This document shows positions 1,565 through 43,333 of a stretch of 64,000 nt of DNA, one piece after another. The notes beneath the pieces are model-generated. The model saw nothing but the letters and a program-made list of their open reading frames with translations. It was not told where the DNA came from and made no database searches. Location of the stretch: IMG/VR virus record IMGVR_UViG_3300035181_000471, positions 124,001 through 188,000 of that record, one strand, 5' to 3'. A program made the position numbers and the translations under genes. Numbering within the stretch: position 1 is the stretch's first letter; each line of letters begins with the position of its first letter.

Positions 1565-4266
<2,702 letters not shown>

Positions 4267-7198: not shown

Positions 7199-10100
7199 AT
7201 GTCATTACCTTGGCTCCAACCAATTGAAGGCGTGTCCTTTAACCAAATTACCGGGCTATCCGATGCCGCTCCGCTTATCGAGGGTGTAGCATCGCCTGGA
7301 ACCTCTACGCTTGTCGCTAGAGCAGACCATGTGCATCCCGCTGGCGGTGGAGCCGCAGGTGCTACGGGAGCTACCGGAACCACAGGTGCTACCGGAGCAA
7401 CCGGAAACCCTGGGGCCACTGGCCCAGCTTCTACTGTAACAGGCCCTACCGGAGCGGCTGGAAACACGGGTATGACTGGTATGACTGGGGGTACCGGAGC
7501 CGTAGGCTTGACTGGGAACAGCGGTGCTACTGGTGGCATGGGTATGACCGGAATGACAGGTGTGACCGGAGCTACTGGCCCAGCCTCTACTGTAACCGGA
7601 GCAACTGGAGCCTCCGGCCCAACTGGTCTAACAGGGGCGACTGGAAACACAGGAAACAGCGGAGCTACTGGGGCTACTGGTTCTACTGGTAATGTTGGTG
7701 CTTATACCATGAATACTGCTAGACTTCTTGGTAGAACTACAGCAAGCACTGGAGCCCCAGAAGAAATTTCTGTTTCCGCCCCTTTATCCTTATCTTCTCT
7801 CGTTTTATCAATTCCTGCTGCAACAACCTCCGCGAATGGCTACCTAACTAGCACTGACTGGAATACATTTAACGGTAAACAGGCGGCGTATACTAATCTA
7901 ACAACATTCGGTTCTCTGCCTAATGCCATTGGTTATCTTTATAATGATGGCTCTGGTGTTCTATCCTATTCTACTACTTTAGGTGGTGTATCAAGTTTTA
8001 ACACAAGAACAGGTGCAGTAACTCTAAACTCTTCTGATGTAACTACCGCCTTAAACTATACTCCAATTAACAAGGCTGGGGACACCTTCACTGGAGCCGT
8101 TGCCTTGAATACGGGGGCGTTATCCGCCGCCAGTTCCGCGTATTCTTCTGTGATTCTGGTGGGTGGCTTGGGATCACCTTGGGCTGGAAAGACATACTTC
8201 GGAGATGGCACTGGGTGGAAGTATGCCTTTTCTCGTCGAAGCGCAAGCGTGGATACAGATGTCCTAACTATCCAGGACAACGGAAACATCAGTTCTTTGG
8301 GTAGTATCTCTGCTGGTGGACAGATAACTGGCACACAGTTCAATGGTTCTGGTGCAGGATTAACAGGGACAGCAAATTCATTAACTGCTGGGGGTGCCCT
8401 GGCTGCTACTCTCTTACTAAACGGTAACAATTGCCAAGGTATTATCAGGTCAAATGGAGATTCTTCACCTAACCTCCATCTTGACCCTACTACTGGCGCT
8501 AATTCTGTATATCTGAATTTCTATGCTGGGACTGGTGGAACCAAATTCTGTAACGGCTCTAATGGTGTTGTGGCTTCTATTGATGGAAGCGGTAACGGTA
8601 ATTTTAATGGCTCTATATCAGCCATCCAAATATACGGTAAATCAAATTTATCAAATCAACAAGCACCATTAAATTATTCCTATATTGGTAGTACAGATGA
8701 TAATGCAACTGATACTGTTGTATTGCTGCACCCTGCCTACAATGGAACAATAATCAATAAGTATCTATTTGATGGCACTATCACATTCCAGCGAGGTAGC
8801 ACTGGATCATCCAATATATCTGATACTTATGTAGTAAAAACTTCTACCGCATATACTTCAAATACTGGTTCTATAATTTCAAGAAATACCGCTAATACTG
8901 CCAATCTCATAACTTGCACATATAACAGTGTGCTTTATGTTGCTATATATGTTCCTAAAACATCATCAAGATCCATATATTACAAGGGTGATCTACTATC
9001 TACGCTTACCAGCCCATTAGTATTATCTGCTTCCTCTGTTAGCAATGTTTCAGTTCTGACACAAGATAATACTAATCTTGGTGGTTCCATATCAGCTACA
9101 TCAGGAACATTTAATACTGGTGGAGCTACTGTCTATGCCGGATTAGAAGTAAAGGCTTCTGGAAATAATACAATCGGTGGTAATAGATCCTCGGTAATCA
9201 TCCATCGCGGGGTTACTACTGGAAATCAATCGGGATTTCTTCAATTCGGAACTCCTGGCGGCACAAGTGTTTGGTGTTTGTTTAATGACTTTGGTGTCGC
9301 AGGAGGAAATGATTTTACTATTTTTAATGTTGCTGGAACCAACGCTCCCGCATTATCCTTCTCTTCTACAAGTGCCGCTACCTTCGCATCATCCGTCAGT
9401 ATGGGTGCGCTAGTAGCTACTTCAGGAACAATAAATGGTCCTGTTGAAATAGGCACAGGAGCGGATAAAACCTCAATAAATTCAGGTTCTATAGGATTTA
9501 ATAGAAGAACCTATGATGGTGCTATATATGATAACACTGGATATGCCTATCAGTGGCAACATACAAAAAGCACAACAGCCGCTTCGGATTATTTAGCACT
9601 ACAAGTATATAATCCCAGTGGCACACAAATAACACCTGTAGCTATTAAGGTTGATGGGAACGGTAATACGCAATTAAGTGGTTCCTTATCGGCTACTAGT
9701 GGGTCTTTTACACTCCCGGTCGTATGCCACTCCATGTCTGCGGGTGCTAATTTTACTGGTAATTGGTCTGGAGCTAACTACTGGGGTATTGGTCCCATTT
9801 CAGCACATGGAATTAGGCTTGGGATGGTAGATGCTTCAAATGCGTTTATGGCTGCCCCCGGAGATATGTCTTTACAGATAGATGCTTCTGTAAGTATGAG
9901 TGCCCTAACTGCTAATTCTGTCTCTATCAATCCAGTTACATTGGATTTATCTGGATTAGATCAAGCTACTTGGTATCCAGTTACTATAGGTATTCCCGTA
10001 AGAAGAAGAACCAGAATGAGAATCATGGTATCTCTTGATTCTGGAACTGTTCCTAATTGGTCCACCCATAGTCAAGGTTTCTCTGTTCTATGTGATTGGA

Positions 10101-11254
10101 CTTCTAATGGTAATGGATGGGGAATTGTTCCTGTCACAAGAACAATTCATACCTACACTTATAGCTGGTCTAATGTAAGTCCTGTTGGTGGCATTGCCCA
10201 AATGTCTAATAGCTCCCTTGAGGTAGTTTATCTAAGGGGTGGTGGTAAGTATTTCTTTGAGGCAGATTATCCAGTTACACCCGTTATTCAGACTACCAGC
10301 TACACAACTAACTCCCAGACGGTTTCTCCATCTACCTCACTAATAAATGATGTGTTTTCATCTGCTAATGCTCCTGTTGCTTTTGGTAGTGGAACATTTA
10401 GTGGTGCCCTATCAGCCTCTAACTTCTCTGGTTCGTCTTCAGGGACAAATACAGGCGACCAAACTAACATCTCTGGAACTGCTTCTAACATTACAGCTTA
10501 TACAATCAACCAAAATCTAGGAGTAGGAAATCAGGTAACATTTGATAGTGTAATTACTGGTAACAATGGTAATGGAACTAATTTTAGAATAGGGGATGAT
10601 TCTTGGATTGGTGATATTAATGTAGCAAATACATTCAGAGTTCAAGGTGTTCAGAATGCCGCCGCTGGTTATATTTGCTTTGGTAATGGTGATACTACAG
10701 CTTTAGGTAGAACTGGAACAGGAGCCTTAACTTATGGCGGTAACACTGTTATTCATTCTGGTAATATCGGTTCTCAAACAGTAGCTACAGCAGGAAACTT
10801 AACAGGACATGCTGCTGGTTATGCTTATGCTGATGGTGGAACAGCCACTAATCTATCAGGTGGTTCTGTTAATGCTACTACGGGAAGTTTTAGTGGTAGC
10901 GTGGGCTCTACTGGTGGAAGTGTATATGCTGCCGCAGGAGATGGTAATGGGTTTTATTTGTGGGGAAACTCCCTAAATTACTCTGTCTATATGTCCTCAG
11001 CAGCTAATGGAACCTACGGTGGAGGTTGGAACCAAAGTGGCAGTCCCGCTTCGGATTACAATATGTATTTCAACATGACTGGTTACGCTCGTGGGTATGC
11101 CTTCAAGAATAATGGAGCCGTATTTGCTCAACTTATTCCTAAGACTGGCGGGTCCTATGTTGGAGGTATGTTGATTCTTCGTGATGTTACAAATAACAAC
11201 GGCTACGGTATCTACATGGATGCCGGAGTAATGAAAGTGATCCAGGTGACCTAA
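7199..11254 (+). CDS. long tail fibre (collagen-like N-terminal segment, mosaic Gly/Ser/Asn-rich modules)
   Basis: G-x-T repeats at about 7358-7700; fibre-type motifs [39 protein letters not shown] and [12 protein letters not shown]. Confidence 0.8.
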
Positions 11255-11874
11255 TGACTTATGCTGCTACACTAGACTATGTTGCTCCTACTACATCTAC
11301 GGGGAAGGAGCTTTACGCTAGTAATGAGTACAACACCTCTACAGGAGCAATCACCAGACCTTCTACAACCTTTGTAGGAGCCTTCACGAAAGATGGGTCC
11401 TCTCGTATTGCATATATTACGGCTTGGACCGTTCAATGCACTTGTGATCTAAACTGTGCTAGTGATGGAGGGTGCTGTCCGGGTCCTTTGGTGCCTATCA
11501 CAATGGCAGATGGGTCACAGAAGCTTGCTAAGGATCTTCAGGCTGGTGATAAGGTCATGGGATACCACGAAGCTGAGAGCCGTTGGGGGGGATTTAGGGT
11601 TAGTGCCGTGGCGCGAGGTATGAACCACCTCTACCGAGTAGAACTAGAATCTGGGATTCGGATGGATTTTGCTCGTAACCATAGACTCCTAGACACTAAT
11701 AACAATTGGTTGCGTGTGGATAGTCTGCGTGTTGGAACTAAACTTTTTGGACGCCTTGGAGGAGTCGTAAAGGCTGTCGAGGACATTGGTTGGGGAGAAG
11801 TTATTAAAATTACTGTGGAAGATGCTCAAACCTACGACACTTGTGGCCTCTTGAATCACAACATTAAGAACTAG
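11254..11874 (+). CDS. Cys-rich N-terminal peptide fused to a Hint (bacterial intein-like) autoprocessing domain
   Basis: QCTCDLNCASDGGC then CPGPLVPITMADGSQKLAKDLQAGDKV (Hint block A), block-B His (ARNH) and terminal HN-IKN; TAATG coupling to the fibre gene. Confidence 0.8.
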   Translation: MTYAATLDYVAPTTSTGKELYASNEYNTSTGAITRPSTTFVGAFTKDGSSRIAYITAWTVQCTCDLNCASDGGCCPGPLVPITMADGSQKLAKDLQAGDKVMGYHEAESRWGGFRVSAVARGMNHLYRVELESGIRMDFARNHRLLDTNNNWLRVDSLRVGTKLFGRLGGVVKAVEDIGWGEVIKITVEDAQTYDTCGLLNHNIKN

Positions 11875-11881
11875 GATCACA

Positions 11882-13249
11882 ATGCACCCAGATTTTGTCC
11901 GCGTCAACTACACAGATTTTGATATTATTTACGCCCCTCGTCTTGATGTGGGGATTAAAGTAAGCCCAGGTGCAGATGGAGATGCTGAAATTGCCGCATT
12001 AGATTTACCAGCCTATGAAGCTCTTGGTGACCCACCATACTTTGTTGATCTAGACTCAAACATATCATTGAAGGACTATGATCAGATTACTTTGGGTATT
12101 ACCAGTAAATGCAACTTGCGTTGTGTCTATTGCTATTGTGATGGTGGTGAACATGATGATACGATGGAAAATAATGACATCATGACAGTGATCGAACAAA
12201 TCCCTAAAATGAGCAAAAAGGAGGTTAAGATCACTCTTTTCTCAGATGGGGAAACTATGGTTGAGCGAAGCACTCTCTTTGCTGCGCTGGCTAGAATTAG
12301 AGAGATTGAAACCGAGTCAGGAAAGGACATTACGGTTATCCTTGTGACTAACGGCTCACTGATCAACGAGTACTCCATTGAGTTTCTAAAAAAGGGGGTT
12401 AATCGCTTTCAGGTCAGCTACGATGGTTGTCCCGAAGCTCAAGGTGTAAATAGACCTAATGCTTTGGGCCAGTCTTCTCACGATGCGGTAGCAAAAGGTA
12501 TCAGGCTCATTGAAGCTGCGGGAATTCCATACCACCTACGAGGAACGGTTACCAGGAAGACAGTCAGACTAATTAGTGAGTCAGTTCGGTACATTCAAAA
12601 CAATTTCCCTCGTGCCCTTGGTTATCATGTTGAACCCGCAACTGGAGAGGGGCGACAAGATGGCCTTGATCCCTCCGTTGAAGATTTCTGTCGTGAATTC
12701 GTCAAGGCCCATAAAATCTCTCGGGATCTTGGGTTCAAACTCATCACAAAAGTTAATCTGGTTCCGAAGAAGGGGTTCTGTGGGGCCACAACTGGTCCAG
12801 GTTTATATATCACGCCTAATGGGGACCTGACAGGGTGTTCACGAGTCACACGCAAGGATGACCCGCTTGCAGATAAGTACATCTATGGTTCGATTAATCT
12901 GAAGACCGGAGATCTTCATTTTGACTATGATAAAGCCAAGAAACTTCGTCAAGCCACAGTTGTTGATGCCTACCCGGACTGCGAGGGTTGTTTTGCTCGT
13001 GCTAGCTGCGCTGGAGGTTGTTCAGCTATCAGAGATCAAGGTGGTCATGACTTTGATTGTGAGTCTACTAGAATCCTGACCAAATATCTAATCCTAGATC
13101 GCTACGAGAACGGAGAGTGTCGTAACCAAGTCATTGATCGAGAACTAGCGTATAAGAAGCCTAGGGTTGAGATTAAGTTTACCCCATCACAAATGCAGAT
13201 GGCACAGCCGACTGGCTTCTCAGTCTCATTTTCAGCCGCTAATCACTAG
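11882..13249 (+). CDS. radical SAM enzyme with C-terminal SPASM domain
   Basis: CNLRCVYC (CxxxCxxC), VTNGSL, VSYDG; SPASM cysteines FCGA...GDLTGC...CEGCFARASCAGGC...DC. Confidence 0.92.
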   Translation: MHPDFVRVNYTDFDIIYAPRLDVGIKVSPGADGDAEIAALDLPAYEALGDPPYFVDLDSNISLKDYDQITLGITSKCNLRCVYCYCDGGEHDDTMENNDIMTVIEQIPKMSKKEVKITLFSDGETMVERSTLFAALARIREIETESGKDITVILVTNGSLINEYSIEFLKKGVNRFQVSYDGCPEAQGVNRPNALGQSSHDAVAKGIRLIEAAGIPYHLRGTVTRKTVRLISESVRYIQNNFPRALGYHVEPATGEGRQDGLDPSVEDFCREFVKAHKISRDLGFKLITKVNLVPKKGFCGATTGPGLYITPNGDLTGCSRVTRKDDPLADKYIYGSINLKTGDLHFDYDKAKKLRQATVVDAYPDCEGCFARASCAGGCSAIRDQGGHDFDCESTRILTKYLILDRYENGECRNQVIDRELAYKKPRVEIKFTPSQMQMAQPTGFSVSFSAANH

Positions 13250-13261
13250 GAGAACAACACT

Positions 13262-14701
13262 TTGACCTCACCTCGCTTTAATCATACTGTTATTACACTT
13301 CTTGATGGTCGAGTCGCCATTATTGGTGGCAATGAAGAAGGAGTTCTTGCAGACATCGAAATCTTTGACCCTAATAGTCAGAAATTCACTATAGCTGGCG
13401 GAGTTTTGACTTCTTCACGCCATTCGCATTCAGCCGCGCTGACCGATACTGGAGAAGTTGCCCTCATTGGTGGAGGTACAGCCTCAATTGATACCTATGA
13501 CCCTGTAACTGATAAAGTGCAAGTGCGTAATGCCAACCCTTATCAAGATAGTGCCCTACATATTAAGTCTAAGGCCCTGAACATTGGCAATCACACCATT
13601 CTCGTTTACGGTGGGTATACAGCTAATAGATTCTACAATCCCGTATTGATTGACACTGAGACTTGGGTTTCCACAGAGATGAACACCGTCAGTCAGCATC
13701 GTATAGACTTCGCCATTCTTAGACTCAAAAATGGAAAGGTGCTGATTAGTGGTGGTTGGAATAGTGAAGGTGTTAAATCAGACATTGTGCAGTTTGATCC
13801 AGTTGATACCAGTTTTGTCACCCTGGCGTTGAATTTGACCTCTCCTCGCAAAAATCATACTATGGTTGAATACCCCAACGGTAAAGTTGGTGTCTATGGT
13901 GGTTATGATGTTAATGGTGTACCCCAGAAGACCGTAGAGGAACTAGACCTGTCTGCTTTGACAAGCACCACCAAGGGAAACCTAATTGATTCAAGGGCAA
14001 ATATGCAGTCTGTGTGTCTGCCAAATGGCTACACACTCCATGTCGGAGGCACAAACCTCAACAACTATGCCACAAACGCCTTGATGGTCTATGATCCTGA
14101 CACGATGAGCAGCGGCTACACGGGCTCGATTATGGGACTCAGTGCAAATTTAGCTGTAACCGAAATCCCTAAGGGTCTCTTGTTGGTCACTGGCGACTAC
14201 ACTGAGATACTAGACCCTCAGTCGAGTATCTTCATAACCTACCACACTACCTGGGTTCCGACTAGTGAGGAGATCCAGTTTACTGCCAATGGTGCTACTG
14301 CGGGTCTGGTATGGAGTTGTGATGTCGGTACAATTGACCAGACTGGCCTCTACCACACCCCAAATATGCCTGTAGCTGATGTTGCCTACATCACCGCCAC
14401 AAATAATGCAGGTCAGAAAGCTATAGCACACATAAACTTCCTCAAAGCGGTCGTAAACATTACAGGCCCTACGCTCACTTCCTTCAACACTCCGGCTCAG
14501 TTTAGCGCCAGTGTAGCTTACTATCGTACGATCCAAACTGTAACTTGGTCCATTGATGATTCTACTAAGGGGAGCATAGACGCCACAGGTCTCTTTACCC
14601 CCGCCCAGGGCTTCACTGGTACGGTTCGAATCAAGGGCACCTGTGACGCCAATCCGGTACACTCCTCCACCTTTGACCTAATTGTTGATCTTGCTGGCTA
14701 A
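13262..14701 (+). CDS. Kelch-repeat beta-propeller with two C-terminal Ig-like (Big2-type) domains
   Basis: TTG start with GGAG SD; Kelch repeats (PRFNHTVITLLDGRVAIIGG, PRKNHTMVEYPNGKVGVYGG etc.); VWSCDVGTIDQTGLYHTP and VTWSIDDSTKGSIDATGLFTP. Confidence 0.85.
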   Translation: MTSPRFNHTVITLLDGRVAIIGGNEEGVLADIEIFDPNSQKFTIAGGVLTSSRHSHSAALTDTGEVALIGGGTASIDTYDPVTDKVQVRNANPYQDSALHIKSKALNIGNHTILVYGGYTANRFYNPVLIDTETWVSTEMNTVSQHRIDFAILRLKNGKVLISGGWNSEGVKSDIVQFDPVDTSFVTLALNLTSPRKNHTMVEYPNGKVGVYGGYDVNGVPQKTVEELDLSALTSTTKGNLIDSRANMQSVCLPNGYTLHVGGTNLNNYATNALMVYDPDTMSSGYTGSIMGLSANLAVTEIPKGLLLVTGDYTEILDPQSSIFITYHTTWVPTSEEIQFTANGATAGLVWSCDVGTIDQTGLYHTPNMPVADVAYITATNNAGQKAIAHINFLKAVVNITGPTLTSFNTPAQFSASVAYYRTIQTVTWSIDDSTKGSIDATGLFTPAQGFTGTVRIKGTCDANPVHSSTFDLIVDLAG

Positions 14702-14853: not shown

Positions 14854-14873
14854 ACTTTTCAACTCTCTTGTGT
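14854..14873 (+). promoter_or_regulatory. candidate late promoter motif
   Basis: ACTTTT-caact-CT-cttgt-GT, ending immediately before ATG 14874. Confidence 0.45.
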
Positions 14874-19813
<4,940 letters not shown>

Positions 19814-33647: not shown

Positions 33648-36600
33648 ATGGCACTTTTCGATCAGTACACAGAACCAGGAGTCTACACCCGTGAATCGGC
33701 GGACGCTCCTGGTGTCATCCTATTCGGTGACCTTCGTATTCCTATCTTCATCGGAGAGGGAGTCGAGGAATTCACCAATAAGAATGTGACCCTCCACAGA
33801 GGTTCTAGTTCTGTGGCCGATGATCTAGTGGTCAAGGAAAACATCACTGACCAGCTTTACAACGAGAGCAACATCTACAGTCCCACTCGCTCCTTCCAGC
33901 TAACTTACTTTCCTGTTGTTAAGGGTGATGGAACTGGAACCACCACTTCCCAGCCTACCGACATCACCGTCCTAGCTAACGGAGTTCCAGCCGCCGTAAC
34001 CTCCCTAAACGGCGTTACTGGTGAGCTAATGCTCCACGACATCTACGGTGCTGATACCACCCTAGAAGTCACCTACTACTTCAAGCGCAAGGATACTTAC
34101 TTCGCTAACGAGAATGTGTCTTCTCAGGTTCCTACCTTCGCTACTTGGACACAGCAGGCCAACCTCGTCCTATCGCTAACTAACCCTGGCGCTCTAGGTA
34201 ACAATGTCACCCTAGCTCTAACCAAGGTCACTCCCACCTCTGATGCACTAGCTGTGTCTGGTATCGGAACTGACTCCATCTCCATCGAGCTACAGCGCAC
34301 CGCTAAGGCAATTGCTGTTGGCCTACCCCTAACCTTCAATGCCGCTGGTAAGACCATCACCAGAGCTACTGGAACTTGGCCTGCTGAGGGTGTTAAGATT
34401 GGTGACTCCATCACCCTATCCGGTTTCGGAACTTCCGCCAACAACAAGGTTGTGACTGTATCTGGTGTGACTGACACCACCCTAACTGTGGCTGAGGTTC
34501 TAACCAACGCTACCACTGAAGTTGGAACTGTCTCCCTAATCGCAGTCAGATCCCTAACTGACCTAAAGAACCTAGTTCTTTCTGGAATCACCACCCTATC
34601 TGCTGGTGACCTAACCGTTGTTTCTCTAACTTCCGGTTTCGAAAATCTAGGTGCAACCGCCGCTTCCGCCTCCTTCTCCGGTGGTGCTGGACCCTCCTCT
34701 AACACCGTCTTTAAGGTAGCCCACACTCCTATCGTAGATGGTGCCAACGGTGGTGTTGTAACTTCCAACGCCTCTAAGGTTCAGGCTACTGTGAACGGGC
34801 TACCTGCTCCTATCGTAGCTGTTGATGGTCCTAACGGCCTAGTCACTCTAGCCTCCTCCGTGGTTGCTGGACAAACTGTGCTTCTAAGCTACTACTCCAA
34901 CAACTATCAGGACACCTACGAGCTTCTACCCTCTTCCAATGTCACCAGCATCTCTAATGTCGGTTACGGTCCTGACCGTGCTGATTTCGTAAACGGTGTT
35001 GATTATGTTCTAGAGAACCTAGCTAACGGTTCCAGCCGCATCCAGTGGGGAGCTTCTGCCTCCGTTGCTACCGGAACTTGGACTGCTGGCTTCACTCCTT
35101 TCGATGCCTCTGTAGTCACTACCACTCTAATTGACGAGAAGGTATACATGCAGCCTGTTCAGGGTGAGGTCAATGGCAAGAACGCCATCTTCACTCTAGC
35201 TGACAGCCCTGTTGATGGTTCTGGCCTCTCCAGAACTACTAACGATCCTGCTCTAGTTCAGATCTACATCGGCGCAAACCCTGTAGCCGCTCTAGCCGCT
35301 GGTGCTGTTCGCGTCATTCAGGTCGTCGGGGCTAACCGCACTGTCAAGCTCTACAATCCTCCTGCATCTGGAACCGTCTACGCTTCCTACTACAGAAGCG
35401 CACTAAACGACCACAGCTACACCTTAACTGTCGGAACCCCCGGAATCACCGGACAGGGAACCTACAAGATCTCCAATGAGCTAGGTGCTGTTATCGCTCC
35501 AATCGTTGCTGGTGCTTCTGCTGTAAGCGAAGCCGCAAACTTCGCTTCTACCGGAATCGTATGGCCTATCAACAACGCCCTATCCGTTCCCGACCTCTCC
35601 ACCACTCCTGGTGTAAGCCCTGATGAAACCATCACTCTCACCTTCCAGGATGACAGCCTTCAGTTCACCGTAACTCCTGCTGTCCAGGCCACTGCCAAGG
35701 ACACCTCTGGAGCCGGAACCAATGCCGCCATTCAGTTCCGCACCACTACCGCTTCTTCCGCTCCTAACGGTGTTGTGACTGTAGTGCTACAGGCTGGTGC
35801 TGGCGTTGCTGACGCAGTTGCCATCACTGGTGGTGGAACCAACGCCATCGTGGTCAACATCCTAAAGAATGGTGGAACTGTCTCCAGAACCCTACAGGAG
35901 ATCATCAACCTATTCGCTACTTACCCCACCAGCACCCCCCTTGGTGGATTGATCATCTGCGAAGCCGCTCCTGGATCTGGCCTAAGCCTAACCGCTAACG
36001 CTGTTCCTACCTCTGGTGGCCCCATTGCCTTCACTGGCGGTGTGACTCTTGTTCAGACCCCCTACGCTATCCGCTACAAGGTGACTTCTTCCAGAACCAC
36101 CACCAACCAGACCGCTGATGGAATGGGCCTAACTGGTGGAGTACACACTCCTTCCTACCTCAACTACTCCGGTGGTGGAACTCCTGTAGGAGCCGATGGT
36201 TACCTAGATCAGACTTACATTGATGCCGCAACTGGTGTCAAGTTCACCATCGTCAACCCAACTGACGCTCTAAGCTTCGGTTACACTTCCCTGCCCTCCC
36301 CTTCCTACCACTACCGTCCAGGTGACACCCTAACCTTCACCGTGAACAAGGCTACTGCTCGTTATACCTCTTCTGTCCCCACCGTCAGCATCCCTGGCCT
36401 AAAGGTCAAGGTAGCCTCTACCTACGGAATGAAGGCCGCTGACACCGCAGTCATCACCACCTACAACAAGGCTGGTAATGAGCCCTCAATCGGTGACTTC
36501 TACTATGCAAGCTATACCGTGGCTAAGAGCGAGAGTGACATGGGTCTAAAGATCTACACTAACCCTGTAGACGCTTACGCTCAGTACGGTGATCCTAACC

Positions 36601-37538
36601 CAACCAACAAGCTATCCCTAGCTACCCGCCTCTTCACTCAGAATGGTGGACAGATCTTCGGATGCATCCAGGTTGCTAAGGAAGTTGGCCTAGAGACTGC
36701 CTCTGACCAGGCTTTCATGACCGCAATCGCTTCTCTAGCAACTCCTCTACCCGGCACTGATCGTAAGGCCGATATGATTCAGCCTCTAACCACTTCTCCA
36801 GTGGTTGTACAGTATCTAAATCGTCACCTTCTAACCCAGTCCTCTCAGCGTAACTCTGGAGAAGCCACCGCAGTTTACGGCTTCGACTACTACGCAACCC
36901 CCGACACCATGAGAAACTCTGCCCGTTCCATTAAGTCTGATCGTATGATCGCCGTTGGAACCCCCGGAGCCATCCTAGAAATTGATGTCGCTGGTAAGAC
37001 CGCTGAGTTCGCTGTCGGTGGTGAGTTCCTCGCCGCTGGTATGGTCGGAATGATGATCAACCCCGCAATTGATGTTGCTACCACTCTAACCAGACAGAAC
37101 CTAGTTGGTTTCAGCCGACTCATCAAGAGATACGATGGTCCTACTATGGATCAGATGGCCTCTGACGGTGTTACCTGCATCCAGGAGAACAACGGCGCCT
37201 TCCAGGTTCGTCACTGGATCACCACTGATAACTCCAGCCCCCTCAAGAGAGAGCCTACTTCTCGCTTGATCGTTGACTACACTCGCAAGATCGTTCGTAG
37301 AAACCTAGATCAGTTCATTGGTCGTAAGCTAATGCAATCCACCATGAACTCTGTCTCCATCGTAGCCTCCTCTACTCTAAAGGCCCTAGTGGAACAGGAG
37401 ATCATCGAAGGCTTCAAGAATCTCGTAATCGAGAGAGATCAGGCCGATCCTACTGTTCTTCATGTGAGGTTCTCCATGAAGCCCATCTTTGCTCTGCTCT
37501 ACATTGATGTGGCTCTAACGGTCTCCACCAAGCTATAA
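33648..37538 (+). CDS. contractile tail sheath protein (1296 aa, large insertion domains)
   Basis: N-terminal PGVYTRES; C-terminal sheath core IVDYTRKIVRRNLDQFIG...DPTVLHVRFSMKPIFAL. Confidence 0.92.
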   Translation: MALFDQYTEPGVYTRESADAPGVILFGDLRIPIFIGEGVEEFTNKNVTLHRGSSSVADDLVVKENITDQLYNESNIYSPTRSFQLTYFPVVKGDGTGTTTSQPTDITVLANGVPAAVTSLNGVTGELMLHDIYGADTTLEVTYYFKRKDTYFANENVSSQVPTFATWTQQANLVLSLTNPGALGNNVTLALTKVTPTSDALAVSGIGTDSISIELQRTAKAIAVGLPLTFNAAGKTITRATGTWPAEGVKIGDSITLSGFGTSANNKVVTVSGVTDTTLTVAEVLTNATTEVGTVSLIAVRSLTDLKNLVLSGITTLSAGDLTVVSLTSGFENLGATAASASFSGGAGPSSNTVFKVAHTPIVDGANGGVVTSNASKVQATVNGLPAPIVAVDGPNGLVTLASSVVAGQTVLLSYYSNNYQDTYELLPSSNVTSISNVGYGPDRADFVNGVDYVLENLANGSSRIQWGASASVATGTWTAGFTPFDASVVTTTLIDEKVYMQPVQGEVNGKNAIFTLADSPVDGSGLSRTTNDPALVQIYIGANPVAALAAGAVRVIQVVGANRTVKLYNPPASGTVYASYYRSALNDHSYTLTVGTPGITGQGTYKISNELGAVIAPIVAGASAVSEAANFASTGIVWPINNALSVPDLSTTPGVSPDETITLTFQDDSLQFTVTPAVQATAKDTSGAGTNAAIQFRTTTASSAPNGVVTVVLQAGAGVADAVAITGGGTNAIVVNILKNGGTVSRTLQEIINLFATYPTSTPLGGLIICEAAPGSGLSLTANAVPTSGGPIAFTGGVTLVQTPYAIRYKVTSSRTTTNQTADGMGLTGGVHTPSYLNYSGGGTPVGADGYLDQTYIDAATGVKFTIVNPTDALSFGYTSLPSPSYHYRPGDTLTFTVNKATARYTSSVPTVSIPGLKVKVASTYGMKAADTAVITTYNKAGNEPSIGDFYYASYTVAKSESDMGLKIYTNPVDAYAQYGDPNPTNKLSLATRLFTQNGGQIFGCIQVAKEVGLETASDQAFMTAIASLATPLPGTDRKADMIQPLTTSPVVVQYLNRHLLTQSSQRNSGEATAVYGFDYYATPDTMRNSARSIKSDRMIAVGTPGAILEIDVAGKTAEFAVGGEFLAAGMVGMMINPAIDVATTLTRQNLVGFSRLIKRYDGPTMDQMASDGVTCIQENNGAFQVRHWITTDNSSPLKREPTSRLIVDYTRKIVRRNLDQFIGRKLMQSTMNSVSIVASSTLKALVEQEIIEGFKNLVIERDQADPTVLHVRFSMKPIFALLYIDVALTVSTKL

Positions 37539-42040: not shown

Positions 42041-43333
42041 ATGACCGCAAAACCTTCACTAAGAGAAAGAATCGCTACCCTAAAGGCCGAGAAAGAAGCC
42101 AAGACCGCCGCTTCTGCTTCCAAATTCTCTGCTAAGGAAGCAAAAACTCGTGTAGCCGCTTCTTGGACAATCGCCAAGACCCTACTTCCCTCCGCTCCTA
42201 GCGAAGTGCAGTATAAGTTGGCTTCTTCCCTACTAGGGAACTCCACCAATGCTTTGACCGCCATCGTGCGTCAGGCCGCTGTAAATGCTCACTGGACCAA
42301 GGTCGCAGAGAAGTTCGAAGAGATGCACAAGGTCGAACTAAATGAGCTAATCGAAGACCCCTCTCTTCTCAGCAAGATGCAGAATGAAGTTGAGAAAGAG
42401 CTAAAGGGCGAAGCCAAGAATGCTTCTGCTAAGTGTGAGTGTGGTAAACCCGGTTGCCCCGAGTGCAACCCTAAGACTGCAAAGGCTAAAAAGGCCGAAG
42501 GTGAGAACAAGCCCATTGAGAACAAGCCCATTGAGGATAATGAAATCAAGGAACCCGAAACGGAAGTCCCCGCTCCTTCAGTTGAAGACTCCTCTATGGA
42601 AGACTCCTCTATGGAAGACTCCTCTAATGAAGCTGACGCCGATGCCTCTGATGCTCCCGTTTCTCCTGCCGAGAACAAAAAGGACATTCTAGTAGAGCAG
42701 ATTCAGACCATTAAGGATGATGTTGCCGCTCTAGAGGAAGAAGTAACTGAAGGCGAGGAACTTGACTTCTCTGCCATCTTCGATGAAGAGGGAATGGAAG
42801 ACAAGGCTGACAATCTAGCCAATGAGAATGAGGATTTTGATGGCGACATCGAAGCTTCTGGTGAAGGATTCTTCACTCCCTCTGATGCTGGTGATCTAGA
42901 AGGCGCAATGGACGCTGATGGCATGGACTTCGCTGACGCTTCTGACTTCTTCTCCCACTCCGCCTCCGTAGACTCTATGGATGGCTTATTCGCTGGTGAA
43001 GCCAAGACCGCCGCTAAGGATGATGTCATTGCTCCTGGTGAGATGGGTGACAAGATCGTAAGCAAGGGAAATGTGGATGATGCTGAGTCGGACCACGAGG
43101 ACAACATCCTATTCGAAATCCTAGGCGATATCAAGTCTGTTGCTTATGAAGATGGCGAGTATAAGAGAACCACTGAGCCTAAGTTTGAGAAGGCTGCTTC
43201 TGCCAAGCCTGCTCCTGCTGTGAAGCGCCCAATTCGTTCCCTAGGTAATGTGAAGACTGCCGCTCCTTCACAAAGCGTTGAGAAGACTGCACTGGCTTCT
43301 CTAGTCTTCCCCGATGACGAACTCTTCGGATAA
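42041..43333 (+). CDS. capsid scaffolding protein (putative)
   Basis: Highly acidic, helical, between protease and capsid genes; many KTAA/KxA motifs; small Zn module CECGKPGCPEC. Confidence 0.7.
   Translation: MTAKPSLRERIATLKAEKEAKTAASASKFSAKEAKTRVAASWTIAKTLLPSAPSEVQYKLASSLLGNSTNALTAIVRQAAVNAHWTKVAEKFEEMHKVELNELIEDPSLLSKMQNEVEKELKGEAKNASAKCECGKPGCPECNPKTAKAKKAEGENKPIENKPIEDNEIKEPETEVPAPSVEDSSMEDSSMEDSSNEADADASDAPVSPAENKKDILVEQIQTIKDDVAALEEEVTEGEELDFSAIFDEEGMEDKADNLANENEDFDGDIEASGEGFFTPSDAGDLEGAMDADGMDFADASDFFSHSASVDSMDGLFAGEAKTAAKDDVIAPGEMGDKIVSKGNVDDAESDHEDNILFEILGDIKSVAYEDGEYKRTTEPKFEKAASAKPAPAVKRPIRSLGNVKTAAPSQSVEKTALASLVFPDDELFG

Follow-up and report, generated by a model that had tools for sequence, protein, structure and literature searches.

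A candidate three-gene tail-fibre accessory module with a predicted radical SAM-stapled, Hint-exposed C-terminus in a jumbo phage

The described systems closest to the locus of this study are CteB/SCIFF and PapB/PapA, in which a radical S-adenosylmethionine (rSAM) enzyme combines an N-terminal domain for peptide binding with a twin-cluster SPASM domain and is encoded beside a Cys-rich substrate that has an acidic or amide residue at a fixed spacing after each Cys. In QhpD/QhpC, the protein that a SPASM rSAM enzyme furnishes with internal Cys-to-Asp/Glu thioethers is a structural subunit of quinohemoprotein amine dehydrogenase and not a secreted peptide. Peptidase_S74 is a C-terminal intramolecular trimerisation chaperone of phage fibres and spikes that removes itself after assembly by Ser-based cleavage, and Hint domains of the bacterial intein-like (BIL) type activate the C-terminal end of the preceding polypeptide as a thioester. 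In CXXXD motifs, PapB connects Cys with Asp/Glu, joining the Cys sulfur to the carbon adjacent to the carboxylate (PMC12373016), and BIL2 conjugates a ubiquitin-like domain to lysines (PMC8616854). Here we describe a phage locus that shares the rSAM/SPASM enzyme type and the adjacent Cys-rich predicted substrate of CteB/SCIFF and PapB/PapA. It lies in a stretch of 64,000 nucleotides (nt), hereafter the window (positions 124,001 to 188,000 of IMG/VR record IMGVR_UViG_3300035181_000471), and consists of a collagen-like tail fibre gene, a gene for a 206-amino-acid (aa) protein with a Cys-rich core ahead of a Hint domain, and an rSAM/SPASM gene.

We consider it probable that the three genes form a tail-fibre accessory module whose product carries an rSAM-stapled C-terminus exposed by the Hint domain. 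In the proposed mechanism, the rSAM would bind the 206-aa precursor, probably through an N-terminal domain resembling the recognition element (RRE) of peptides that are ribosomally synthesised and post-translationally modified (RiPPs), and would install intramolecular cross-links in the C62–C74 core, the most likely chemistry being thioethers from Cys sulfur to carbon on the Asp/Asn of the C-x-C-D and C-x-x-D motifs. After cross-linking, the Hint domain would perform an N-S acyl shift between C74 and C75 and leave (its tail, I-K-N, is probably shed too, by cyclisation of Asn203). What would remain is a 74-residue product that ends freely in the stapled core. It would stay on the fibre, as a tip or decoration that is rigid and resists reduction and proteases. 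Action of the rSAM on the Cys core is very likely on sequence grounds and self-removal of the Hint domain is likely; a fibre-associated virion component is a probable outcome, and thioethers to D/N/Q are slightly favoured as the chemistry. We infer the order of the steps, with cross-linking before Hint release.

The Cys core and the adjacent maturase

The 206-aa protein carries five Cys (C62, C64, C68, C74 and C75) in 14 residues directly ahead of the Hint domain (nt 11437–11478). The cluster is not a chance one, because Cys accounts for 0.9% of the 19,072 residues in the 44 long open reading frames (ORFs) of the window, C62–C75 is the only 14-residue stretch with five Cys among them, and shuffling of the protein's own six Cys gave an equal cluster in 46 of 200,000 trials. 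The only close homologue (P0001, 61% identical) is encoded on a 1.5-kb contig (L008). The fibre end, the TAATG junction and the rSAM start of L008 match those of the window, and the five Cys and the Hint domain are all kept. Codon-position differences between the two (21/17/46 over codons 1–75) fall mostly at third positions, which indicates that the N-terminal part is coding and translated. In a public protein collection the ORF is present only as a 123-aa product starting from Met84, inside the Hint domain (P0002), so automated annotation hides the Cys core.

The fibre TAA overlaps the ATG of the 206-aa ORF by one base (TAATG junction: CCTAATGAC), and the rSAM gene begins 7 nt downstream of that ORF. 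According to Pfam, the rSAM scores 60.1 bits against Radical_SAM (cutoff 29.5). Its C77/C81/C84 (CX3CX2C) and seven SPASM-region Cys (C300, C319, C367, C370, C376, C380 and C393) are invariant in 27 homologues, and the seven align to the SPASM region of CteB; the SPASM model of Pfam was not among the matches reported for the window protein. The features that the original prediction had read from the letters, i.e., the overlapping stop and start, the five Cys directly ahead of the Hint domain, the rSAM start, the about 70 extra residues ahead of the rSAM core and the full SPASM Cys set, were all found where it had placed them.

The rSAM family profile matches CteB at 6e-57. Among curated models, the best match of the window rSAM is the PapB ranthipeptide maturase (9.6e-33; 113.8 bits vs cutoff of 340), followed by nif11, SCIFF (83.7 vs 425), QhpD (83.4 vs 453), StsB and CefB, and none of the curated equivalog cutoffs (PapB, SCIFF, CefB, CcpM, CXXX-repeat and others) is reached. 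In a fold comparison, CteB is matched by the whole AlphaFold2 (AF2) model of the enzyme (predicted local distance difference test score, pLDDT, 84). The match takes in the N-terminal domain, which the anaerobic sulfatase-maturating enzyme (anSME) lacks: 459 columns are aligned to CteB as compared to about 381 to anSME, which is without the RRE. Residues 6–47 are modelled as three strands and two short helices (pLDDT 65–87). Judging from its sequence, the enzyme is a member of the rSAM/SPASM maturase class, of no named equivalog. Since anSME is the second-best structural match, conversion of Cys to formylglycine by an anSME-type enzyme was also considered, and we regard it as scarcely credible: the sulfatase-maturase model reaches 67.9 bits (cutoff 349), the core contains no C/S-x-P-x-R motif, no sulfatase gene is found nearby, and the N-terminal domain of the rSAM aligns with CteB, not with anSME.

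Recurrence of the fibre, partner and rSAM genes

Searches of 50,697 phage records (blastn/tblastn) with the module returned no close relative (rSAM matches were at most 27% identical, and Hint matches were to inteins only), and single-sequence IMG/VR scans with the rSAM returned the source contig alone. After L008, the next phage relatives of the rSAM have the same gene order and are found in L009/L010 (34% identity), L020 (32%) and L088/L089. In these loci, a fibre ending in ...Y.[IL]Y[VM][DE].G.LK[VLM][IV]QV is followed by a protein in which a shared module of about 55 residues precedes CxC repeats, and then by the rSAM, whose start overlaps or nearly abuts the preceding gene. The L020 triad is embedded in a P2/Mu-like baseplate cluster (with baseplate V/W/J/I-like genes around it). 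In a tree of 54 sequences, the rSAMs of the four phage lineages group in a single clade (SH-aLRT 99) that lies among bacterial ones. The conserved fibre ending is seen in L008, L010, L020, L088, L090, L174 and L175, each time directly upstream of a partner-family gene; in isolated phages the terminal motif was not found, and only the region preceding it was matched (by Alteromonas and Xanthomonas phage fibre proteins).

A profile of the residues ahead of the core plus the core itself, searched against 1.84 billion protein representatives, identified ten proteins. Three have the Cys core (P0035, P0001 and P0036), and the other seven (P0037–P0043; 214–557 aa, plus one of 86 aa) do not. In at least six of these seven, the module is at the extreme C-terminus and stops (…DG.NG[YH]WF…., then the stop codon) where the core begins elsewhere; P0039, P0040 and P0043 end exactly at the core start position, come after the same fibre type and have no rSAM. 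Such Cys-less partners were seen in genomic context in L090, L174 and L175, with a fibre of the same ending upstream and no rSAM downstream. Cys core and rSAM are thus found together in four lineages and are both absent in three (7/7 partner-family lineages). Pfam, PHROGs and NCBIfam contain no family that covers the partner module or the bacterial CxC proteins described below. On this evidence, the first ~60 residues of the 206-aa protein are a conserved fibre-partner module with an appended Cys core, not a throw-away leader, and the protein is a minimal member of the fibre-partner family.

The phage rSAM clade nests within bacterial and archaeal rSAMs (27–34% identity), which are followed by peptides of 46–55 aa or by proteins of 125–650 aa that are rich in C[ST]C[DNEQ]xV units. 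No NCBIfam model covers these relatives of the rSAM or their CxC targets. The residue after CxC is N, D or Q in 16/18 cases in the close clade and in 65/86 cases in other phage Cys-repeat proteins, against a background of about 17% for N+D+Q. By analogy, this C-x-C-[D/N/Q] spacing resembles the fixed Cys-acceptor spacing of the PapB CXXXD motifs. We note that in one bacterial neighborhood (L015:6001-12519), the rSAM relative and a 52-aa CxC peptide are neighbours of a CHAT/NB-ARC/TPR protein of 1377 aa and of a PycTM-like gene, a setting that looks like one of the conflict or defence type.

These observations bear on two other explanations. Cys-rich stretches are often metal-binding and metal sites are known in phage fibres, so the cluster might be a metal, Fe-S or disulfide site, with the rSAM acting on the fibre, another protein or a small molecule. 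We find this improbable, given that the Cys core tracks the presence and absence of the rSAM in every partner-family lineage, that bacterial members of the rSAM clade are likewise paired with CxC proteins, and that the conserved D/N/Q after CxC suits a cross-link acceptor better than a ligand set. The other explanation, which we hold unlikely though the least so of the alternatives, is a diffusible RiPP (bacteriocin-like, signalling or anti-defence) that is freed by the Hint domain, the fibre being an incidental neighbour; the mature product of the window would amount to no more than 74 aa, and the 46–55-aa precursors beside bacterial rSAM relatives are in some cases near ABC transporters or conflict-system genes. 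Against it, the family of residues 1–61 always comes after a fibre whose C-terminus is conserved along with it, in other members these residues form the end of 214–557-aa proteins, translational coupling to the fibre is conserved, the module is without protease or exporter, and a related class member (IBB_35 gene 3-9, see below) is listed in a virion proteome. As a group, the alternatives are disfavoured because core, rSAM and fibre end co-vary strictly.

The original prediction had named two in-silico outcomes that would speak against it, rSAM homologues with no Cys-rich neighbours and a Cys cluster that is not conserved. We examined both and found neither: rSAM homologues adjoin Cys-rich neighbours in bacteria, four phage lineages keep the gene order, and all five Cys are retained in the 61%-identical relative. 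The proposed Cys-rich Hint precursor stands as to its rSAM association and its conservation; the picture is corrected in that the ~60 N-terminal residues are not a throw-away leader. Measured by RiPP criteria, core and maturase logic are present, the 'leader' is a module of larger fibre-partner proteins and there is no leader protease, so that the system would be called RiPP-like rather than a classical RiPP.

The Hint domain and the C-terminal position of Cys stretches

The Hint domain is sub-threshold in Pfam (Hom_end_hint 22.3 vs cutoff of 32.1; Intein_splicing 19.8 vs 35.8), and its identification was confirmed by fold. Residues 80–200 of the AF2 model of the 206-aa protein have pLDDT of 84–92, and the best PDB matches in a fold search are BIL2 (6y75, E 2e-10) and the Ssp DnaB mini-intein (template modelling score, TM, 0.82), with the gp41-1 mini-intein, a C. 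thermocellum BIL and Hedgehog among further matches; TM over the fold matches is 0.75–0.87, normalised to the target. Alignment shows the catalytic residues to be present (Cys1 C75, block-B His143 and the terminal His202-Asn203), and no homing endonuclease is found in the domain. The +1 residue is Ile204 and the remaining tail is only I-K-N; lacking a +1 Cys/Ser/Thr, the domain would be able to cleave and not to splice canonically. A canonical intein was rejected on this ground, and also because no host protein is restored by splicing and the scores are below the Pfam gathering values. Sequence and model together point to a BIL-like autoprocessing domain, not a splicing intein.

Hint domains are present in the window and L008 and in P0036 (L088), where the domain comes directly after CTCNQV repeats, and are absent from L020 and L009/L010; the partner proteins of L020 and L010 end natively a few residues past the last Cys. 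As L088 (with Hint) and L020 (without Hint) are sisters in the rSAM tree, Hint was gained or lost within the clade. The order of Cys repeats followed by Hint recurs independently in P0036/L088 and in L034, the latter beside a collagen-like fibre and two rSAMs. Phage genomes often carry inteins (e.g. L003, L004 and L007), and the absence of Hint from L020 and L009/L010 means that it is dispensable for the modification itself; the domain might thus be a decaying selfish intein or a BIL insertion without a role. This we judge very improbable: it is not inside a host protein and is found at the extreme C-terminus, right after the last core Cys, in the same position in three lineages (window/L008, P0036 and L034), with Peptidase_S74 there in others, and the catalytic Cys1, His and His-Asn are kept as compared to the relative at 61% overall identity, with a purifying-selection pattern and no homing endonuclease. 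As a side observation, one ORF (L005:1-2358) encodes a collagen-like fibre followed by at least four tandem Hint domains, each of which ends in ...VHNK and restarts with CF....

An IMG/VR scan with the rSAM alignment gave 68 further loci, at which Cys-cluster ORFs were called with a threshold of at least six Cys in 24 residues. A same-strand Cys-cluster ORF is found at 47/68 loci (about 43 once the SPASM regions of the rSAMs themselves are taken out), as compared to three on the opposite strand and one such ORF in a control sequence of about 124 kb. At about 40 of the 68 loci a Cys-repeat protein is nearby, and these proteins include tail-fibre-like proteins and an RCC1 propeller. In 30 ORFs, no more than 20 residues separate the Cys stretch from the C-terminus. 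In six, Peptidase_S74 comes after it (Pfam above cutoff in both tested, L073 and L083), and a Hint domain does so in L034 (Pfam above cutoff), where the Cys-repeat gene is between a collagen-like fibre (upstream) and the two rSAMs, i.e., the layout of the window in an unrelated protein family. Peptidase_S74 starts right after the Cys cluster in L073, L083, L085, L052 and L050, the position held by Hint in the window. The protein of L074:5071-5565 stops natively at ...CGCNY, and from exactly that point its homologues L073:8348-9178, L083 and L085 go on with the SDERLK start of Peptidase_S74; the former can be read as the natural equivalent of the cleaved product. Hint, Peptidase_S74 and a native stop are thus equivalent in position, and the common denominator appears to be a Cys-repeat stretch that ends at the mature C-terminus.

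Several further features were seen at these loci. In L073:5246-8391, the Cys-cluster/S74 protein comes after two distinct SPASM rSAM genes and a gene that resembles UDP-glucose dehydrogenase, and several maturases per substrate seem common (L073 and L034 each have two rSAMs). L033:4738-6648 (= L039) encodes an RCC1 beta-propeller protein and a tandem 119-aa protein with near-identical CxxxC repeats, both ending in ...CDGCDGRWF; the L033 propeller carries the Cys repeats itself, and the window has a separate Kelch propeller gene after the rSAM. In several contigs of sample 3300045988, a CxxxC-repeat ORF beside an rSAM is split by one in-frame TAG mid-repeat, conserved across contigs, with the repeat resuming in frame (L046:3368-3841, L051:7402-7917 with the stop at 7768-7770, L055, L059–L061 and L080), which may be stop-codon recoding or readthrough.

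Among cultured phages, CP220 gp140 (L178:2161-3765), which is the same as IBB_35 gene 3-9 (L179:1300-2904), is a 535-aa protein about 2 kb from an rSAM gene, with seven CTC[DN]CNY heptads and further CxC[NDQ] units. The 21-bp 'repetitive region x.1-x.6' annotated in CP220 is this CTC[DN]CNY coding repeat. IBB_35 gene 3-9 is among 38 virion proteins identified by mass spectrometry, with 2.6% coverage, and the rSAM gene 3-5 is not listed (PMC3322345). The CP220 paper reads the 11–12 rSAM genes as metabolic, contains no discussion of the Cys-repeat protein and makes no mention of cysteine (PMC2853527).

As to the fate of the core, the original prediction had the peptide either freed or ligated by the Hint domain. 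Self-removal is the most likely of the two, as for Peptidase_S74 elsewhere. Ligation, in which the Cys74 thioester would be captured by a virion nucleophile such as a fibre lysine, so grafting the stapled peptide without ATP or a ligase, is suggested by analogy to the isopeptide conjugation of BIL2/BUBL and is doubtful. One candidate acceptor, the conserved Lys in the fibre ending (…LKVIQV), was set aside, as Asn takes its place in L008, the closest relative with a Hint domain.

Several points weigh against a stapled and Hint-exposed C-terminus. The Pfam scores of the Hint domain are under the cutoffs and its block-B Thr is replaced by Ala, which leaves Hint cleavage no more than plausible. 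With no equivalog cutoff reached by the rSAM, the exact chemistry is unreadable from family membership, and its N-terminal domain is shorter than a canonical RRE. Within the family the window has the smallest core, with a single CxC-D and a single CxxD, and AF2 is not confident for residues 1–73 of the 206-aa protein (pLDDT 30–60). The IBB_35 proteome match, at 2.6% coverage, concerns a distantly comparable protein with internal repeats and a different rSAM subfamily.

Setting of the locus and comparison with known systems

The window comes from a 221-kb IMG/VR contig of a soil-type jumbo myovirus whose nearest isolate is the Tunturiibacter phage Tunturi_5, an acidobacterial jumbo phage (sheath 43% identical). 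Tunturi_5 was rejected as a model for the module, as it gave no rSAM match in the phage-record search and is not syntenic upstream of the sheath. Table 1 lists the features of the locus. Four collagen-like fibre genes are found within 20 kb (1565-3973, 7199-11254, 14868-17519 and 17528-19813), and the tail sheath gene (33648-37538), unusually long at 1296 aa, is in the same window, so that the module is in a tail-cluster setting. The gene after the rSAM has several Kelch matches above the Pfam cutoff, and a Big_2 domain is probable (20.3 vs cutoff of 22.8), in agreement with the Kelch/Ig protein proposed from the letters. It is absent at the equivalent position in L020 and L009/L010 and is a neighbour outside the conserved module; of the four genes first described (fibre, Cys-Hint, rSAM and Kelch), the first three make up the module. 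Among the non-rSAM proteins of the window, the only other place where Cys is locally concentrated (4 in 14 residues) is a single CECGKPGCPEC knuckle in a very acidic 430-aa protein (42041-43333), which may be scaffold-like.

Table 1. Features of the fibre, partner and rSAM locus (window coordinates).
Feature	Coordinates	Strand	Evidence
Collagen-like tail fibre, 1351 aa	7199..11254	+	ORF; Pfam Collagen and tail-fibre PHROGs
Conserved fibre C-terminal module, last ~35 aa, ending ...Y.IYMD.G.MKVIQVT	11147..11251	+	Alignment
206-aa ORF, fibre-partner protein	11254..11874	+	ORF
Fibre-partner module, residues 1-61, motif DYVAP..GK.YASN.YN.STG ... IAYITAW	11254..11436	+	Profile search, coding signature
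Cys-rich core C62-C74 (C-T-C-D-L-N-C-A-S-D-G-G-C), predicted rSAM substrate	11437..11475	+	Sequence, CxC[D/N/Q] statistics
Mini-intein-like Hint domain, C75-N203	11476..11862	+	Alignment, AF2 model, fold search
Tail I-K-N plus stop codon	11863..11874	+	ORF, Hint alignment
Radical SAM/SPASM gene, 455 aa	11882..13249	+	ORF; starts 7 nt after 206-aa ORF
rSAM N-terminal ~70 residues, RRE-like	11882..12091	+	AF2 model, fold alignment to CteB
Radical SAM core, SPASM region and disordered C-terminal tail	12092..13249	+	Pfam, profiles, AF2 model
CX3CX2C motif of rSAM	12110-12133	+	Sequence
SPASM region C300-C393 of rSAM	12779-13060	+	Sequence
Kelch beta-propeller and probable Big_2	13262..14701	+	Pfam

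If the proposed reading is true, phages apply RiPP-type radical chemistry to their own fibre-associated proteins, making stapled C-terminal knobs that are exposed by Hint or S74, and this would be a new kind of post-translational modification for virion and receptor-binding proteins. It would account for the frequency of SPASM rSAM genes in phage genomes, which have been read as metabolic in Campylobacter phages, and, for bacteria, would delineate an rSAM/CxC-repeat family that is large and uncurated. It would also provide compact genetically encoded modules (core, maturase and self-cleaving Hint) for stapled protein termini. Should the ligation outcome hold instead, the phage would encode a self-contained system of the 'cross-link then ligate' type for decorating receptor-binding proteins.

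The CteB and PapB systems are the best sequence and structure matches to the window rSAM. As compared to them, the predicted substrate in the window is a C-terminal extension of a fibre-partner protein and not a free leader-core peptide, and it carries the motif C-x-C-[D/N/Q]. The window module lacks a leader protease and an exporter and has a Hint domain after the core. QhpD has an unrelated substrate and cellular context, and its model score for the window rSAM is far below the cutoff. The CXXX-repeat target rSAM family (NCBIfam TIGR04115) pairs a SPASM rSAM with Cys-repeat targets and was, like the module described here, defined by bioinformatics; the window rSAM is in another clade and its target has CxC spacing. 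Phage rSAMs beside CxxxC-repeat tail proteins come close to that model (L034 234 and L066 309 bits; cutoff 350), and we found no description of the family for phage tail proteins in the literature searched.

Peptidase_S74, at the same position after the Cys cluster, differs from Hint in fold and mechanism (Ser-based cleavage vs Cys-based N-S acyl shift). BIL domains, including Tetrahymena BUBL BIL2, are the best structural match to the window Hint and likewise have no homing endonuclease and no canonical +1 nucleophile; for the window Hint, hydrolysis is a simpler reading than conjugation to an acceptor as in BIL2. The Firehammervirus phages CP220, CPt10 and IBB_35 (11–12 rSAM genes) are the cultured counterparts, with SPASM-type rSAMs near a CTCDCNY-repeat protein; they differ from the window in having internal repeats, no Hint and rSAMs of another subfamily. 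In the literature searched, which covered few subscription journals, no Cys-repeat phage tail proteins paired with rSAMs were described. Three things are new with respect to all of these systems: a C-terminal extension of a fibre-partner protein as the predicted substrate, C-x-C-[D/N/Q] as its unit, and the coupling to a self-removing Hint for which Peptidase_S74 can stand in.

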